64,000 nucleotides of DNA from Ascoidea asiatica JCM 7603 (Eukaryota; Fungi; Ascomycota): positions 191,623 through 255,622 of the forward strand of contig BCKQ01000002.1 in assembly GCA_001600695.1 (NCBI GenBank), in the 5' to 3' direction. Of this stretch, positions 2,406 through 17,076 are shown one piece after another. How positions within the stretch are numbered: position 1 is the first letter of the stretch; each line of letters starts with the position of its first letter. The translations under genes and the position numbers were made by a program. The notes under the pieces are model-generated. The model ran no database searches, was not told the origin of the DNA, and saw only the letters and a list, made by a program, of their open reading frames with translations.

Positions 2406-3926
2406 ATGGCTGCATTATCCGATAAAGAATTATTTGACCTTAATAAAAAGGCTGTCATAGACGGTTTTAAAATTCATCCAAGAATTAATTATAATACTGT
2501 TGGTGGTGTAAATGGTCCTTTAGTTATTCTTGAAAATGTTAAATATCCACGTTTTAATGAAATTGTAAATTTAACTTTACCTGATGGTACAGTTAGAGCT
2601 GGTCAAGTCTTAGAAGTTAGAGGTGATAAAGCCATTGTTCAAGTTTTTGAAGGTACTTCTGGTATTGATGTTAAAAAAACTAGAGTTGAATTTACTGGTC
2701 AAAATTTAAAACTTGCAGTTTCTGAAGATATGTTAGGTAGAATATTCGATGGTTCTGGTAGACCAATTGATAATGGTCCAAAAGTTTTTGCTGAAGATTA
2801 TCTTGATATTAATGGTTCTCCAATAAATCCTTATGCAAGAATTTATCCAGAAGAAATGATTTCAACTGGTATATCTGCAATTGATACAATGAATTCAATT
2901 GCAAGAGGTCAAAAAATTCCAATTTTTTCTGCTTCTGGTTTACCTCATAATGAAATTGCTGCTCAAATTTGTAGACAAGCTGGTTTAGTTAGACCAACAA
3001 AAGATGTTCATGATGGTCATGAAGAAAATTTCTCAATTGTTTTTGCTGCAATGGGTGTAAACTTAGAAACTTCAAGATTTTTTAAACAAGATTTTGAAGA
3101 GAATGGTTCTTTAGAAAGAACAACTTTATTTTTAAATTTAGCTAATGATCCAACAATTGAAAGAATTATTACTCCAAGATTAGCTTTGACAACTGCTGAA
3201 TATTTAGCTTATCAAACTGAACGTCATGTTTTAACAATTTTAACTGATATGTCTTCATATGCTGATGCTTTACGTGAAGTTTCTGCTGCAAGAGAAGAAG
3301 TACCTGGTAGAAGAGGTTATCCTGGTTATATGTATACTGATTTATCAACAATTTATGAAAGAGCTGGTAGAGTTGAAGGTAGAAATGGTTCCATAACTCA
3401 AATTCCAATTTTAACAATGCCAAATGATGATATTACTCATCCAATTCCTGATTTAACTGGTTATATTACTGAAGGTCAAATTTCAATTGATAGACAGCTA
3501 CATAATAGAGGTATTTATCCTCCAATTAATGTTTTACCTTCTTTATCAAGATTAATGAAAAGTGCTATTGGTGAAGGTATGACAAGAAAAGATCATGGTG
3601 ATGTTTCAAATCAATTATATGCCAAATATGCTATTGGTAGAGATGCTGCAGCAATGAAAGCTGTTGTTGGTGAAGAAGCTCTTTCAACTGAAGATAAACT
3701 TTCGTTAGAATTCTTAGAAAAATTCGAAAAAACTTTTATTAATCAAGGTGCTTATGAAAATAGATCTATCTTTGAAAGTTTAGATCAAGCTTGGTCTTTA
3801 TTAAGAATTTATCCAAAAGATTTATTAAACAGAATTTCTCCAAAAATTTTAGAAGAATTTTATGATAGAGATAGATCTGAAGATGATGAAGATAAAGATG
3901 ATGATAAAGATTTGTTAGATGCCTAA
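2406..3926 (+). CDS. VMA2: V-ATPase V1 subunit B
   Basis: Starts [10 protein letters not shown] (ATG 2406). Motifs [56 protein letters not shown]. Confidence 0.98.
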
Positions 3927-10076: not shown

Positions 10077-10566
10077 TTAATTAGAAATTTGATTACCATT
10101 AATTTTAATAAAACCAATTTTATTTTCTTCTTTTATTTTCATATGTTCATACCAATCTTCAATATTATTACTACTACTATTATTATGTAAAGCAATAATT
10201 ATTATTGTCATATTATCATAACCAATTCCTTTAATTTCATCAGTATTATTTAAAATTTTTTCAATTATTAATTCTGAAATTTTATCTAATTTTAAACCTA
10301 ATCTTAATTGTAATCTAATAAATTTTATAATTTCACTATTTTTAAATATATCCCAAATTCCATCACATGCTAATACAAAAAATTCATCATTTTCAAAATT
10401 TAATTCATGATATATAATTTCAGGTTCAACAGTAACTTGAGTTTCTTCTGAAGGTATTAAAATTTTAAAAAATTTTTTATCTTCAGATTCTTTATCATCA
10501 CTTTCTTTGTTTCTATCTTTGTTTTTATCTTTGTTTTTATCTTTATCTTTTGTTGTGATTGTGGTT

Positions 10567-10598
<32 letters not shown>

Positions 10599-11618
10599 TG
10601 TTGATTGAACTTTTGAATGTATACTATTAACATTAGTTGTATTATAAATTTCATTTAATTTATTAATATAAATAAATTTTTTTTTAAAATTAAAATCTCC
10701 AAAAGCTCTACTTAAAGCTAACATACCATCAACTCTATTTGAATTAACATTACCACCAGCATCAGAAATTCTTAATAATTCACCAATATTTTTTGGTTTA
10801 TGATCAAAAGATAAATTTTTATTACTACCATTAAAACAACTTAATATACATCTTGAATCACCAGTATTAACAATAAAAGATTGTTTATTATTTATAATTA
10901 TTAATAAAATTGCAGTTGAACCTGATTTTATATCTTTTTTATATAAATCATAATCAATTTTAAAAAATGAATCTTTAATTAAATTTTGATAAGTTTTTAT
11001 TTTCCATATATCATTATCACTTATTATATTACTATTATTATTACTATTATTATTACTGGTATTATTACTGGTATTATTACTGGTATTAATATTATCATTA
11101 TTATTATTTATGTTATTATTAATATAAATTGATTGATGTTTATTTGAATAATCTTGAAAATAATTTTGAAAAGTTTGTATTATTGTATTCGATAAATTTT
11201 GAGATAAATATTTTGAACATTTAAAACCTCCATGACCATCAAATACACCAAATATTTTAATATTTAATTCTTCTTCTTTAATTTGATATTGTCTTCCAGC
11301 AGTTATATTACTATTGTTAATATTATTATTAGTAGTACTACTATTAGTACTACCGTTACTACAAATACTACTACTACCAATATTATTATTAATATTATTA
11401 TTTATATTATTACTATTTGATAATAAACTTGGATTTGATATTGGAATTGTAGAAGTTTTAACTAATTTTGAAAATTTTAGAGTTTTATCAATTGCACAAT
11501 GAGCATCTTCCATTGTTAATCTCCAACCTTGACAAGAACTTATACAATATGACATTTCTTTTAAACTATGAATAGAAATTGATTTATCCGTCACTGGCTG
11601 TGAAGCTAATTGACCCAT
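10077..11618 (-). CDS. PTC4: PP2C protein phosphatase, Ptc4 type
   Basis: MGQLASQP start, QGWRLTMEDAH, FGVFDGHGG, NTGDSR, SFDHKPKNIGELLRISDAGG, LALSRAFGDF, ACDGIWD, GYDNMT, with poly-Asn loop insertions. Confidence 0.9.
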
Positions 11619-12092: not shown

Positions 12093-12600
12093 TTCTCTCC
12101 TATCGCTCAGTTCCCGCTTCTTTCCTTCTTCTTTCTCTGTTCTCCTTCCGTTTTCTTTTCTTCCCGTTCTTTTTCCTGTCTTTTTCCTGAGAAATACTAA
12201 GTGAAGTCACATCATCTCTATTTGCAGATATTATCAGCCTCATAACGGCGCATATTTACTTGATTAGGAAATATAAGGCGTAACAACTTTTGAACAAAAA
12301 TTATATTGACATTTAGCTATTTATCCGTACCATGGAATATATCCTCTCCAAAATCCATTTTCGCATAAATAATTGTGGGCCTTTAAACAATAAAAGAGGC
12401 CCACCTCAAACAAATGATCCCAAAATGTTTAAACAGTAATTTGACCGGCACTTTTATTTATTACCCTTTTCTTTACTTCTGCCTTCGGTTATATCACATG
12501 TCTCCACCCCTTTTTTACCCTTCAAATATGTGTTTTTAATGATACTACTAGAATCTCAAACAATAGGAACCTGGTTATACTTCTTTAAAAGGATTCAAAT

Positions 12601-13148
12601 CCTATAATATCTACTGTTATGCATTTTATTCAAAGCTTCAAAAAGATCATTAGTTCATATAATGGTTTCTTCTATTATTGATTATATATATATTTATTAA
12701 CTTGGTTCAATTGTTAAAAACGTCTTAGTCAATTACTTTTTCATGATTTCTTTCATTCGAGCTAAAAAACTTAAACATTGTTTATTATATAGTTCTTACT
12801 AATCTTTCAAATAATTAATCAATTCAACTAAATCAACTTCATTATTACAATCACATAGTATTGTGCAAACATCTTAATTCAAATCTGATATGAAAGAGAC
12901 TAAGACAAATAAATTAATTCTTTTTTAAATAATTTATTACCATGTTTTTGTCACAAGATACTAAAATAAAATATGTTTTATTCCCTAAATTTTTTATCAA
13001 CTAGTATGACTTTCATAAGTCCATCCACATATAATTGATTTAAACATTATACAAATCCTCTTCTATCTCTTCTTCAACTATTCATTTCAATAGATAAACT
13101 CCCTTTGGTTTTTGTAATTAACGAAAAGCCAAATGAATCATTAACTGA
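12601..13148 (-). pseudogene. Decayed MULE (DDE) transposase fragment
   Basis: Hand translation with stops and one frameshift near 12900: FGFSLITKTKGS...LYVDGLMKVILVDKK...IL*QKH...MKK*LTKTF...TII*TNDLFEALNKM. The order matches the Mutator/IS256 D, CxxH, W and TNxxExxN motifs. Confidence 0.6.
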
Positions 13149-13269
13149 TGTTTGTTTTTGCTTTTGTTACATTGTTTATTTTATTGCTTGTTGTCTATTG
13201 TCTATTGTTTATTCATTATTGATGTATCTAATTTTATAATTATATCTATATTATCATTCAATATAAAAA

Positions 13270-14120
13270 AACAATAAACAATAATAATAATAATAATCAA
13301 TAAGAAAAGTGTTAGTTAAAGTTCCAACTCAATCATTCAAAAACTACAAATCTTAAATTCTAGACATGAGCAGAATTTTATTGAAAATAATTTATCGAAT
13401 CCAATTAAATCTCAATATGGAAATCGAAAAGGAGATTCAAGACCAAATTCTATTGTTTTAAATTTATATTCTGATCATATCTATAAGGAGCAGTCTACAA
13501 ATGAAAACAGTTCAAGTATCGCCACCAATGACAACTCCAAAAATGATACTAGAATATTTAGTTCGGGCCATTCAAATACCAACTTCTTTTTTCATGATCT
13601 TAACTCGACTTTGTTAGACCAGTTTGAAATGAAAATGGAAAACCTATTAATGTTTGAAGACACTTACGATAATAGCATTAATAATGAGAATATGATCAAT
13701 GAGAGAAATAGTTACAATAATCTAAATCTATCTCTGCAGAAGTAAGTTCTTCTGTTATGGGTCCTTCTAAAGTGGGAACGTCTATTGTAATTGTTTTTCC
13801 AATTGAGGATTAAAGTCTCTTAACAAAAAGTAATGATTTTTTGGATGATGATCTAGATAAATTTTTTTCTCATTTAAATGTCAAACCAAATATCCCAGGG
13901 GAGTCTTTTGGAATTTCTAATTAATCATTCTCTGATGATAAAAAGAAACTTAATATCATTCCTTCTCCAATTGTTGTTCCACTTACTTCTACAAGTGCTG
14001 GTTTCTTTAGAAGCCTTCTCCTTTACCGCCACTGGGAAACGAGTTGCAGCAATAATCTTAGGAATTTAATATTGACGTATTCGATATTGAAGAGTTTGAT
14101 AATACATTAACAATCTGTTA
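13270..14120 (+). pseudogene. Decayed gene-like fragment inside the MULE (captured host sequence or second element gene)
   Basis: Stop-to-stop frame 13320-13745 of 141 codons (...RKGDSRPNSIVLNLYSDHIY...LLDQFEMKMENLLMFEDTY...). It continues through stops and frameshifts (DFLDDDLDKFFSHL; PSPLPPLGNELQQ*S*EFNIDVFDIEEFD). No early ATG. Confidence 0.55.
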
Positions 14121-15276
14121 GTACTGTACTTCTTTTATATATATTTTTGGTTATTTATTCTCTAAAAGAAAGTTTTTCTAATTGTTTGAGTCTTGAAATA
14201 TAAATTTCTTTCAGAACAGACCTCGGTGTTTCAAAAAACTTCACGAGTTAAGTATCCGGTTTGTCATTTCCGGTAAATGAGTGGACGGTTTTTAAACATA
14301 TCACTTAAAATATATGTTCCATTTATAGAGGGTACCTGGCTTTCAATGTTAATACTTTCTGGTCATTCTTGAAATTTCGGGCCAGATTTTAAATCCTTTG
14401 TCGGATTAAAATGCGGTTATATGCGGATTTTTGGTGATTTCCGCTGAGCTTTTTCAAAAGTTCATTTTTCAAAAACGTGACAAAATTACTTCCTAAATAG
14501 GAAATAATATCTGCAAATAGAGATGTTGTGTCTGCAAATAGAGATGATGTGACTTCACTTAGTATTTCTCCTTTTTCCTGTCTTTTTCCTGTCTTTTTCT
14601 CACTTTCCCGTTTCTTCCTCCGGATCACCACCCGCATAGTCGACCTTTTTCCTGACCACGGATATGTGGAATCTTTGCGTGTTCTGCGCGTGTTCTGCGC
14701 TCTGTCATACTGTATTTCTCTTACTTCTGCGTGCCAAAATGTACCGCCATACTAGCCGCCCACGTGACACCCTGTTACTTGATTCTCCCATCTTTTCCCT
14801 TTTCAAAACCTTCGAGTTGCTTATAAACTTGATATAAACTTAATAAAACTTTTATTACTTTACCCAGAATGATATAAAAAAAAAACATTTGTATTTTCAT
14901 CCCTTCCGTATTTTAGATTTATATAAAGTAAACAATAACTTTTTATAATTTCAAATCAAATCATTTATATTCTTCATATATCACATAAAATCTAAATTTA
15001 CTCCTAAAAATGTCAATAATTGAAAAGCAAAAACAAAAAAACAAAACAATCTCATTGTTTTATTATAAGAAAGAAAGAATCAATCCTTTTTATTGATCTA
15101 ATCAAAATTATATAAAATAAACAGAGAAAATCTTATTTAAAAAAGAAGAATATTTTAAAAAAAAAAAAAAAAAATGTTCTATAAAAAAAAATATTTTTAC
15201 AATCTATTATAATCATACTGTATTGTATATTACAATTATATAAAATAATGAAATCAAATTCAAATTTATTAAAAAT

Positions 15277-17076
15277 ATGAAAAATCTTTTAAAATTTAAT
15301 AATAATATTTCAAATTTTTTCAATTTTCTTTTAATAAATTTAAATTTATTAATATCAATATTTAATTTAATAATATTAATAATTATATATAAAATTTTCA
15401 ATTCTTCAATTTCAAATAATCTTTTAATAATCAATTCAATTTCATTTCTTTCAATTCTTTCTAAACTTTTAATTTCTTTAAATTCAATATCAATTTTTAT
15501 TTTCTTAAAATTCTCAATATTTTTAATTTTTAATAAATTTTTTATAAAAATTTTAAAAATCAAGAAAAATATAAAAAATTTATTAATTTTTTTAATATTA
15601 ATATTTATTTCAATCATTTTAATCTTAAATTTAATATTAAATTTAATTTTTTTTAATTTCTTCTTTAAAAATTTAATTTCTTGGAATTCAAAAAATTTAA
15701 ATAATCAAATAATTATACAATTTTTTATTTTAGAAATCTTTCCAAAAAAGGATAAATTTTTTTTAATTTTAATATATTTAATATCTTTTTCAATCTCTTT
15801 AATTTTACAATCAACTTTTTTAACTTTTCAATTCTTTTCATTCTTTAAAAATTTCAATATTAATAATAATCAAAAAGTTAGTCTAAAAACTTCTGAAGAA
15901 ACTTTAATTAATAATAATTTATTTAATGAAAAAAATTATAAATTTAAAGATTTAACACTTACAAATAATCTTATAATTAATAAAAATAAAATGAAATTTC
16001 AAAATGGTTTAAGAACTTTTAATTTAACTTCAAATTTATCAAAAAAAACTAGTAATAATAATAATAATAATAATAATAATCATTTAAATTTAAATTCAAT
16101 TAATTATGAAAAAAATATCTTAAATAAAATTAATAATAATTTATTACCTCCTTTTTTACAAAATAATGATAATAATAATAATAATAATAATAATTTGAAT
16201 AAAAATTGTAATAAATGTTTTTATCATACAAAAACTAATAATTCAAATGAATATAATAATAATATTATTCACAATTTCAAATTTCCAAAAGATTTAATAA
16301 GTCAAGATCATATTCATTTAGATTCTAATATAAATAATGAATCAAATAATGAAATGAATAATGAAATGAATAATGATAATAATAATAATAATAATAATTT
16401 AAGTACCGATGATAATGATATATCATTTACTCATTCAATGTTATGGCCATATGATAAAATAATTACAAATATAAGTTCAAACTCAAGAAATAAAAATTCA
16501 ATAGATAATACTAAGGAAAATGAAATTGAAATTGAAAATGAAATTGAAAATGAAATTGATAATGATAATGATAATGAGATTAGTGAAATATCTGTGAGTT
16601 CAATAGTAAATGCTGCAATGAAATCTGATTTAAATTTCATAAAATCTAATATGTCTAAATATATTTTATCTTCTGGAAATAGTTATGAAATTTTAAATGC
16701 AAAAGAAAAATCAAATAGTAATAATAAAAATCAAAATCAAAATCAAAATCAAAATTAAAATCAAAATCAAGATGTAATAATAATAGAATCAAAAGAAAAT
16801 CAAGAACTACAAGAACAACAAAAACAACAAAAACCAGCTAGAAGATTTACTCATTCAATATCTAAATCAATCAGACAATCAATTAGAAGTATATCTTCTT
16901 CACCAGTTAGAAAAAGTTCATTTTCAAATTTTCAAAATGAACAAGTAAATTTTCAAACAGGGCATTTTTCTAGTATGTCTAATCCTCAACAGAATTTTAT
17001 TTTCCATTCAAATACTCCAAGTTTGAACAACAGTAACTTTAGTAATAACAAGAATAAACAATACTTTCACTGGTAA
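15277..17076 (+). CDS. Multi-pass membrane protein with Asn-rich tail, interrupted by an in-frame TAA at 16756-16758 (pseudogene, truncated allele or sequence error); architecture reminiscent of Irc8
   Basis: Several hydrophobic segments in the N-terminal ~190 aa. The frame stays open for 105 codons after the TAA (...PARRFTHSISKSIRQSIRSISSSPVRKSSF...YFHW*). The 5' end is uncertain. Confidence 0.55.

Follow-up and report, generated by a model that had tools for sequence, protein, structure and literature searches.

The DNA analysed here is a window of 64,000 nucleotides from the yeast Ascoidea asiatica JCM 7603, and within it the stretch at positions 12189–14570 has the outline of a DNA transposon. 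The questions raised by this locus are to which class of element it belongs, where its interior came from and whether it still moves. DNA transposons are scarce in Saccharomycotina, and the capture of host gene fragments by Mutator-like elements (MULEs) has been documented almost wholly in plants. The stretch lies within a 1.27-kb divergent promoter region between a PP2C-like phosphatase gene on the minus strand (10077–11618), named from its sequence, and a membrane-protein gene on the plus strand (15277–16758).

The element is bounded by terminal inverted repeats (TIRs), whose outer 40 nucleotides at 12189–12228 and 14531–14570 start with GAG and are complementary at all positions (40/40, 100%), as a sequence-only reading of this DNA had claimed. 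The sequence CTTTTTCCT abuts both arms, at 12180–12188 and 14571–14579. The target is itself repetitive: TRF detects an 11-bp repeat, CTTTTTCCTGT, on either side of the element, at 12168–12189 (2.0 copies) and 14571–14599 (2.6 copies). The left flank is the microsatellite (CTTTTTCCTGT)n at 12168–12188, whose last 9 bp form the left target site duplication (TSD), and the right TSD is followed by the remainder of the microsatellite up to 14599. Removal of the element and one duplicate, which joins 12188 to 14580, gives an unbroken (CTTTTTCCTGT)3.6 array, and the earlier claim that the 11-bp periodicity is thereby restored is borne out. Because the target is a tandem repeat, duplications of 9 bp and 20 bp are inseparable from the window copy alone; the other copies of the family settle the length at exactly 9 bp, the value originally proposed. 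Neither Rfam nor a tRNA scan gave a match in the element or its flanks.

The ends of the family are in fact about 61–65 bp long, with a 21-bp motif present twice in tandem. In their ancestral form they consist of GAGAAATACTAAGTGAAGTCA and, behind it, two tandem 21-bp units that end CATCTCTATTTGCAGA. The right end of the window copy (14510–14570, minus strand) has the full 61-bp form with the motif twice, its outer 40 bp matching the left end perfectly. The 40-bp left TIR (12189–12228, plus strand), which begins GAGAAATACT, has lost one copy of the motif and contains a single one ending CATCTCTATTTGCAGA. The left end of the C7 copy and the right end of the C5 copy also have a single unit, and most other ends have two. 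The 21-bp units are putative transposase-binding sites.

When the TIR 40-mer was searched against the 20.3-Mb genome at up to three mismatches, 19 matches were found, as against 0 for a reversed-pattern control, and the family comprises about 15 loci. Six convergent end pairs have perfect 40-bp TIRs, each with its own exact 9-bp duplication: the window copy (CTTTTTCCT) and the copies at C1:1614211-1616798 (TCTTTGAAC), C5:235880-238104 (CTTTGTTAG), C6:945189-947089 (CGTCATGAG), C7:157723-159946 (ATTGTTGAG) and C14:206066-208466 (GAGGTCTTC). Two same-strand ends, at C2:2486770 and C2:2499196, can be recognised as a seventh insertion with the TSD GTGCTAAAG, because their flanks are exact reverse complements (GTGCTAAAG and CTTTAGCAC); an inversion of 12 kb has since separated the two ends of this element. 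The pairing of ends across the whole assembly, which had been suggested as a check, thus yields a multi-copy family with seven insertions at different perfect 9-bp TSDs, six of them with perfect ends. This sustains the earlier reading of a non-autonomous element that moved recently, here of class II and multi-copy, and the insert in the window is a genuine non-autonomous cut-and-paste DNA transposon. Older members of the family, among them a 510-bp miniature derivative at C1:120424-120933, have 2–8 TIR mismatches, and their TSDs are gone wherever both ends are assembled. An isolated 22-bp end fragment is present at C9:228078. The TIR gave no match in public metagenome contigs.

These boundaries agree with contigs that two independent sequencing studies obtained from the same organism. 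The contigs switch to other flanks precisely at 12189 and 14570, and the depth within the element is about 8–12 times that of the flanks. The left junction of the window copy is present in the contigs of both studies without any difference. The empty sites of six insertions could be reconstructed, and each of the six lies between genes, in most cases no more than a few hundred bp from where an open reading frame starts or ends.

The sequence-only reading had taken the interior to be heavily decayed; it consists instead of fragments of two host genes and not of the remains of a transposase. When the interior was searched against the genome at the DNA level, the other copies were found together with four diverged matches without TIRs. 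All features of the interior are given on the plus strand. The left subterminal region (12229–12685, element positions 41–497) is found in every member of the family and corresponds to no host sequence. It is followed at 12686–13409 (element positions 498–1221) by the 5' region of an acetyl-CoA synthetase (ACS) gene, which matches C12:500479-499752 at 74% identity and contains about 650–670 bp of upstream region together with ACS codons 1–25. The donor on C12 encodes a 701-aa acetyl-CoA synthetase with AMP-binding and ACAS_N domains. The next two pieces derive from one gene on C1. The first (13407–13646, element positions 1219–1458) corresponds to residues of about 1419–1498 and matches C1:915361-915121 at 86% nucleotide and 77% amino acid identity, and the second (13748–14109, element positions 1573–1921) corresponds to residues of about 3331–3451, matches C1:909611-909262 at 82% nucleotide identity and is frameshifted. 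Both matches fall within a single uninterrupted open frame of 3597 aa at C1:919614-908824, and since this frame has a GIT1_C domain at its C-terminus, it can be assigned to a giant SPA2-like polarity protein. The stretch at 14110–14313 matches only the other copies and an old relic at C40:8140-8753 and may be a more diverged SPA2 3' sequence. The right subterminal region (14314–14509) is family-specific.

Consistently, when the host proteins were searched against the family copies by tblastn, the SPA2 pieces were matched with E values between 1e-22 and 1e-70 and ACS residues 1–26 with one of about 1e-5. The ACS and SPA2-like pieces, whose donors on C12 and C1 are unlinked, are joined in the same sense; the window and C14 copies keep the reading frame across the fusion, and the C1, C10 and C5:120418 copies do not. 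Because the donors are long intact open reading frames and the fragments in the elements are broken, the transfer was from host to element. No trace of a transposase was seen in the same sequence. Ten stop-free segments from 12317–13315, in the left half of the interior, were compared with Pfam at E values up to 1 without a MULE or other credible match. The segment at 12601–13148, tried as a fossil transposase, is homologous to the ACS upstream region and showed no match to MULEs by Pfam, tblastn or tblastx. The longest open reading frames in the family copies are 63–126 aa and differ between copies.

A second subfamily is formed by the copies at C5:235880, C7:157723 and C2:2499196. Its members keep just 250 bp of the ACS piece, and their SPA2 cargo comprises residues 897–1080 (C1:916923-916372) and a longer 3' fragment, C1:909719-909247. 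Neither subfamily is descended from the other. This arrangement suggests that both represent different internal deletions of a larger ancestor, which would have held much of the SPA2-like gene in addition to the 5' region of ACS.

The cargo and the ends have had distinct histories. Comparison of the cargo with the host genes gives dS values of 0.23–0.39 and dN/dS values of 0.3–0.7. The ACS ATG is missing in all copies, stops and frameshifts vary from copy to copy, and no open reading frame is conserved. The divergence from the host at synonymous sites, the loss of the ACS ATG and the copy-specific stops and frameshifts together indicate an old capture followed by neutral evolution of the cargo. 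Full copies with perfect ends differ by 4.3–4.8% overall, and among five sequenced copies the pairwise divergence is 2.9% in the left subterminal region, 5.7% in the right subterminal region and 4.7–5.2% in the cargo. In contrast, none of the 400 end bases in the terminal 40 bp of these five copies differs, that is, 0 of 800 pairwise site comparisons. Perfect ends beside internal differences of about 4.5–5% indicate that the ends are held under selection for mobility; most simply, a copy leaves descendants only as long as its ends are intact. Likewise, the seven perfect TSDs together with the internal divergence are most simply read as several lineages, already diverged, each having moved recently.

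Duplications of 9 bp are indicative of Mutator or Merlin, and those of hAT elements measure 8 bp. Neither the Merlin/IS1595 domain (PF12762) nor PF00872 was detected in the genome, and hAT is represented there by three broken relics only. Of the superfamilies represented in this genome, only MULE is compatible with a 9-bp duplication. MULEs are recognised by TSDs of 8–11 bp, typically 9 bp, and by G-initiated TIRs with repeated motifs, and the family has both; the TSDs of Mutyl, the MULE of Yarrowia lipolytica, are reportedly about 9–10 bp. No transposase gene lies between family TIRs anywhere in the assembly, in which several copies contain gaps. The assignment to Mutator therefore rests on the TSD length, the form of the TIRs, the insertion sites and the gene capture. 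On these features the element at 12189–14570 is probably a non-autonomous Mutator-like transposon of the Pack-MULE kind.

The second check that had been suggested, a search for an intact PF10551 (MULE) open reading frame bounded by the TIRs, came out negative: PF10551 is present at five loci in the genome, and none of them is bounded by these TIRs. The mobilisation in trans by an autonomous copy that had been suggested is unproven. The loci at C1:1930062, C1:1988312, C13:427159 and C15:186282 are all decayed or broken and lack family TIRs, and they are thus not suitable partners. The fifth, at C7:840316-843637, is a 3.3-kb single-copy MULE with the only near-intact MULE transposase in the assembly, where no other candidate source of a transposase is present. 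Its product has a MULE domain (E value of 8e-22), a SWIM-like Cys/His motif is seen by eye in the translation, and an in-frame TAA splits two open reading frames. Its GC content is 37% as against 27–30%. It has GAG-initiated TIRs of 670 bp, which start GAGTGAATCTGC, are 98% identical and contain an internal repeat different from that of the family, and it is flanked by a TSD of 8 or 9 bp. The family TIRs show no similarity to those of the three TIR-bearing MULE loci, this one included, and neither tblastn with its transposase nor tblastx of the element against all five MULE loci gave a match. With unrelated ends, a single copy and the in-frame TAA, the C7 element is rejected as the cognate partner, and its cross-mobilisation of the family is unsupported. 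Several family copies are interrupted by assembly gaps, which range from 1.5 kb to more than 6 kb. The runs of N in the C10 and C2:2486770 copies adjoin a nested LTR/Ty3-gypsy retroelement; the gap edges are unreadable at C5:133668-137155, C6 and C8. Since both readable cases have nested LTR/Ty3-gypsy neighbours, the N runs were not accepted as concealed autonomous elements, although the gaps in several copies may hide a partner.

Other explanations of the family have to be weighed against the Mutator assignment. That the element is not mobile at all, being an inverted repeat that arose by chance or a host region that was duplicated segmentally, can practically be dismissed, because the TIR was matched 19 times and its reversed control never, and the flanks of the copies are unrelated, each with its own 9-bp duplication. 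An unlikely but more serious candidate is another or undescribed TIR superfamily with 9-bp duplications, either Merlin-like or new, whose likeness to MULEs would be merely structural. It is favoured by the missing link between any transposase and the family TIRs and by the dissimilarity of these TIRs and of the interior to the MULE loci of the genome. However, the genome has no Merlin/IS1595 DDE domain, its hAT relics are broken and belong to a superfamily with the wrong TSD length, and both MULE relics and a near-intact MULE are present. Moreover, long GAG-initiated TIRs, insertion near genes and capture of gene fragments are typical of MULEs (PMC6446971).

For a family of Pack-MULE type, the remaining alternatives concern its present activity. 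The family may be extinct, its transposase having been lost and its perfect ends and TSDs belonging to insertions too young to have mutated; this explanation has somewhat less than an even chance. It is in line with the failure to find an intact partner in the assembly, with the loss of TSDs and the TIR mismatches of the older copies, and with the contigs of the two studies: the contigs carrying the left junction of the window copy have a depth about equal to that of the flank, and the empty-site joint of 12188 to 14580 was not seen in these contigs, as distinct from raw reads. The sequence to the right of the insertion occurs nowhere else in the assembly, no alternative haplotype contig was found, and look-ups of the neighbouring and donor genes by exact protein gave no match. 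Because neither an empty allele nor a second haplotype contig is at hand, current mobility is unproven and recent movement is inferred. Against extinction, copies that are about 5% apart inside have seven perfect TSDs between them and 40-bp ends that are perfect in twelve cases. The assembly gaps within several copies, from 1.5 kb to more than 6 kb long, also count against it. The converse, that the family is the first Pack-MULE system of a budding yeast, is still mobile and that its transposase lies in an assembly gap or is provided by the single-copy C7 MULE, is a tentative and rather doubtful proposal.

The probable Pack-MULE reading invites comparison with known systems. Pack-MULEs have been described for plant genomes, namely rice, maize, Arabidopsis and Lotus (Jiang et al. 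2004, cited in PMC6446971). The plant elements resemble the yeast family in being non-autonomous, with MULE-type TIRs, 9-bp TSDs, insertion near genes and mostly pseudogenic cargo, and in carrying fragments of several unlinked host genes in one orientation, often from 5' regions. The Ascoidea family in turn has no transposase between its TIRs, contains cellular gene fragments with intact donors and is a chimera of more than one locus (C12 and C1). It is a Pack-MULE-like family in a yeast and a variation on the known plant arrangement. However, its host genome is compact and intron-poor, with a GC content of 27%; the family has about 15 loci and not thousands, its TIRs are about 61 bp long as compared with 100–200 bp or more, and it goes back to one old capture (dS of about 0.3) followed by deletions instead of many independent captures. 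Furthermore, no cognate transposase, that is, no autonomous member with the same ends encoding a MURA/PF10551 DDE transposase, was found in the assembly.

Maize Mu1 and other non-autonomous Mu elements have TIRs starting with GAG and a 9-bp TSD, are mobilised in trans and have interiors unrelated to the transposase gene. However, the Mu TIRs are about 215 bp long and their sequence is common to the autonomous MuDR, whereas the Ascoidea family has no such partner. MULEs known from yeasts are Mutyl in Yarrowia, uncharacterised elements in Candida albicans and T1–T3 in Cryptococcus (PMC7175516). Mutyl (Neuveglise et al. 2005, cited in PMC6446971 and PMC5014426) is, like the present family, a MULE in a Saccharomycotina yeast, but it is autonomous, with a transposase and mutB, and has no host cargo, whereas the Ascoidea family encodes no protein of its own. 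Transduplication by a hAT element in Pyrenophora tritici-repentis and relatives (PMC3538342, PMC6710886) is another case in which a fungal DNA transposon has gained and amplified host gene sequence. However, that element belongs to hAT with an 8-bp TSD, its hosts are filamentous Pezizomycotina, and it carries whole genes, for example a histone H3-like one, and not a chimera of fragments. A search of the literature for gene-capturing MULEs or transduplication in budding yeasts, with Repbase and Dfam outside its scope, found no report.

The history of the family can be pictured as follows. A MURA-type DDE transposase supplied in trans would bind the repeated 21-bp motifs, excise the element and insert it again where the target is cut with a 9-bp stagger, for the most part between genes and close to them. 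The cargo would have been captured once and long ago, as dS of about 0.3 relative to the host genes suggests, probably through template switching during repair of an excision gap. The two subfamilies would then have arisen through differing internal deletions. The cargo would drift as a pseudogene and the ends would stay perfect since only copies with intact ends keep moving.

The mechanism of gene capture by MULEs is still unresolved because the plant systems are slow and highly repetitive. The Ascoidea family extends the Pack-MULE syndrome to a new lineage, with perfect ends, a two-gene chimera that includes a promoter, successive deletions and a 510-bp miniature. Because the insertions lie in promoter regions and the cargo includes ACS upstream sequence, the expression of neighbouring genes may change. 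If the source of the transposase is found, this culturable and intron-poor yeast would provide a tractable model for dissecting gene capture by MULEs.

Several members of the family have been split, interrupted or reduced. (L numbers denote sub-stretches of the assembly and C numbers its contigs.) The two ends of a single member lie apart on C2, at C2:2486770 and C2:2499196 (L027:2001-6093 and L035:4427-6600), with 9-bp flanks that are reverse-complementary (GTGCTAAAG and CTTTAGCAC); a 12-kb inversion close to the contig end separated these ends of one insertion. About 175 bp into its left part, this copy is interrupted by a minus-strand pol of Ty3/gypsy type, beyond which comes an assembly gap. 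An older copy at C10:378514-399639 (L042/L045/L046) is broken by a 6.3-kb gap, and its right end occurs twice together with the flank, with 11 kb in between. This copy also carries a 328-bp direct repeat at a spacing of 6.9 kb (L046 529-855 and 7429-7756), which resembles the LTR pair of a nested retroelement.

Two old ends on different contigs, C1:117412 (L048:3413) and C5:137155 (L026:3988), have outward flanks that match at eight of nine bases (AAACTAAGT and AAACTAAGG). Both ends are located ~120-137 kb from a contig end, suggesting a duplicated subtelomeric block carrying an element end. The 510-bp miniature, MITE-like element at C1:120424-120933 (L025:501-1010) arose from the family by deletion; it has 2-3 mismatches in its TIRs, and no TSD survives at this locus. 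A 22-bp terminal TIR fragment stands alone at C9:228078-228097 (L047:9077-9098); it differs from the 20-nt terminal pattern by one mismatch and has no element sequence next to it. This fragment could represent an end that was truncated, or the leftover of a deletion.

The SPA2-like donor gene lies on the minus strand at C1:919614-908824 (L040/L041), where a single unbroken open frame, with a 100-N assembly gap inside the gene, encodes an Asn-rich protein of 3597 aa with coiled-coil-like repeats and a GIT1_C domain at its C-terminus. The protein is two to three times as large as fungal Spa2 proteins. A 614-bp relic without TIRs at C40:8140-8753 (L039:4641-5254) directly borders a 354-aa gene on that gene's 3' side, and shows 81% identity to element positions 1480-2125 and 85% to the SPA2-like gene. 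Its breakpoints are those of the element, which makes the relic either an ancient remnant of the element or an intermediate donor.

An old MULE at C13:423561-428688 (L037:2561-7688) has TIRs of about 1 kb with an identity of only 70% and a decayed MULE-domain region. It represents a third Mutator family of the genome, unrelated to the others. The single-copy, 3.3-kb MULE at C7:840316-843637 (L034:6317-9638; 37% GC) is bounded by 670-bp TIRs that are 98% identical, start with GAGTGAATCTGC and contain a repeated CACCGTGTTTT motif; its TSD, TGAAATGT, is 8 or 9 bp long. Two ORFs lie in the same frame with one TAA between them: the 273-aa ORF contains the MULE domain, and the 246-aa ORF, as read by eye, a SWIM-like Cys/His motif. 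This locus holds the sole near-intact MULE transposase of the genome.
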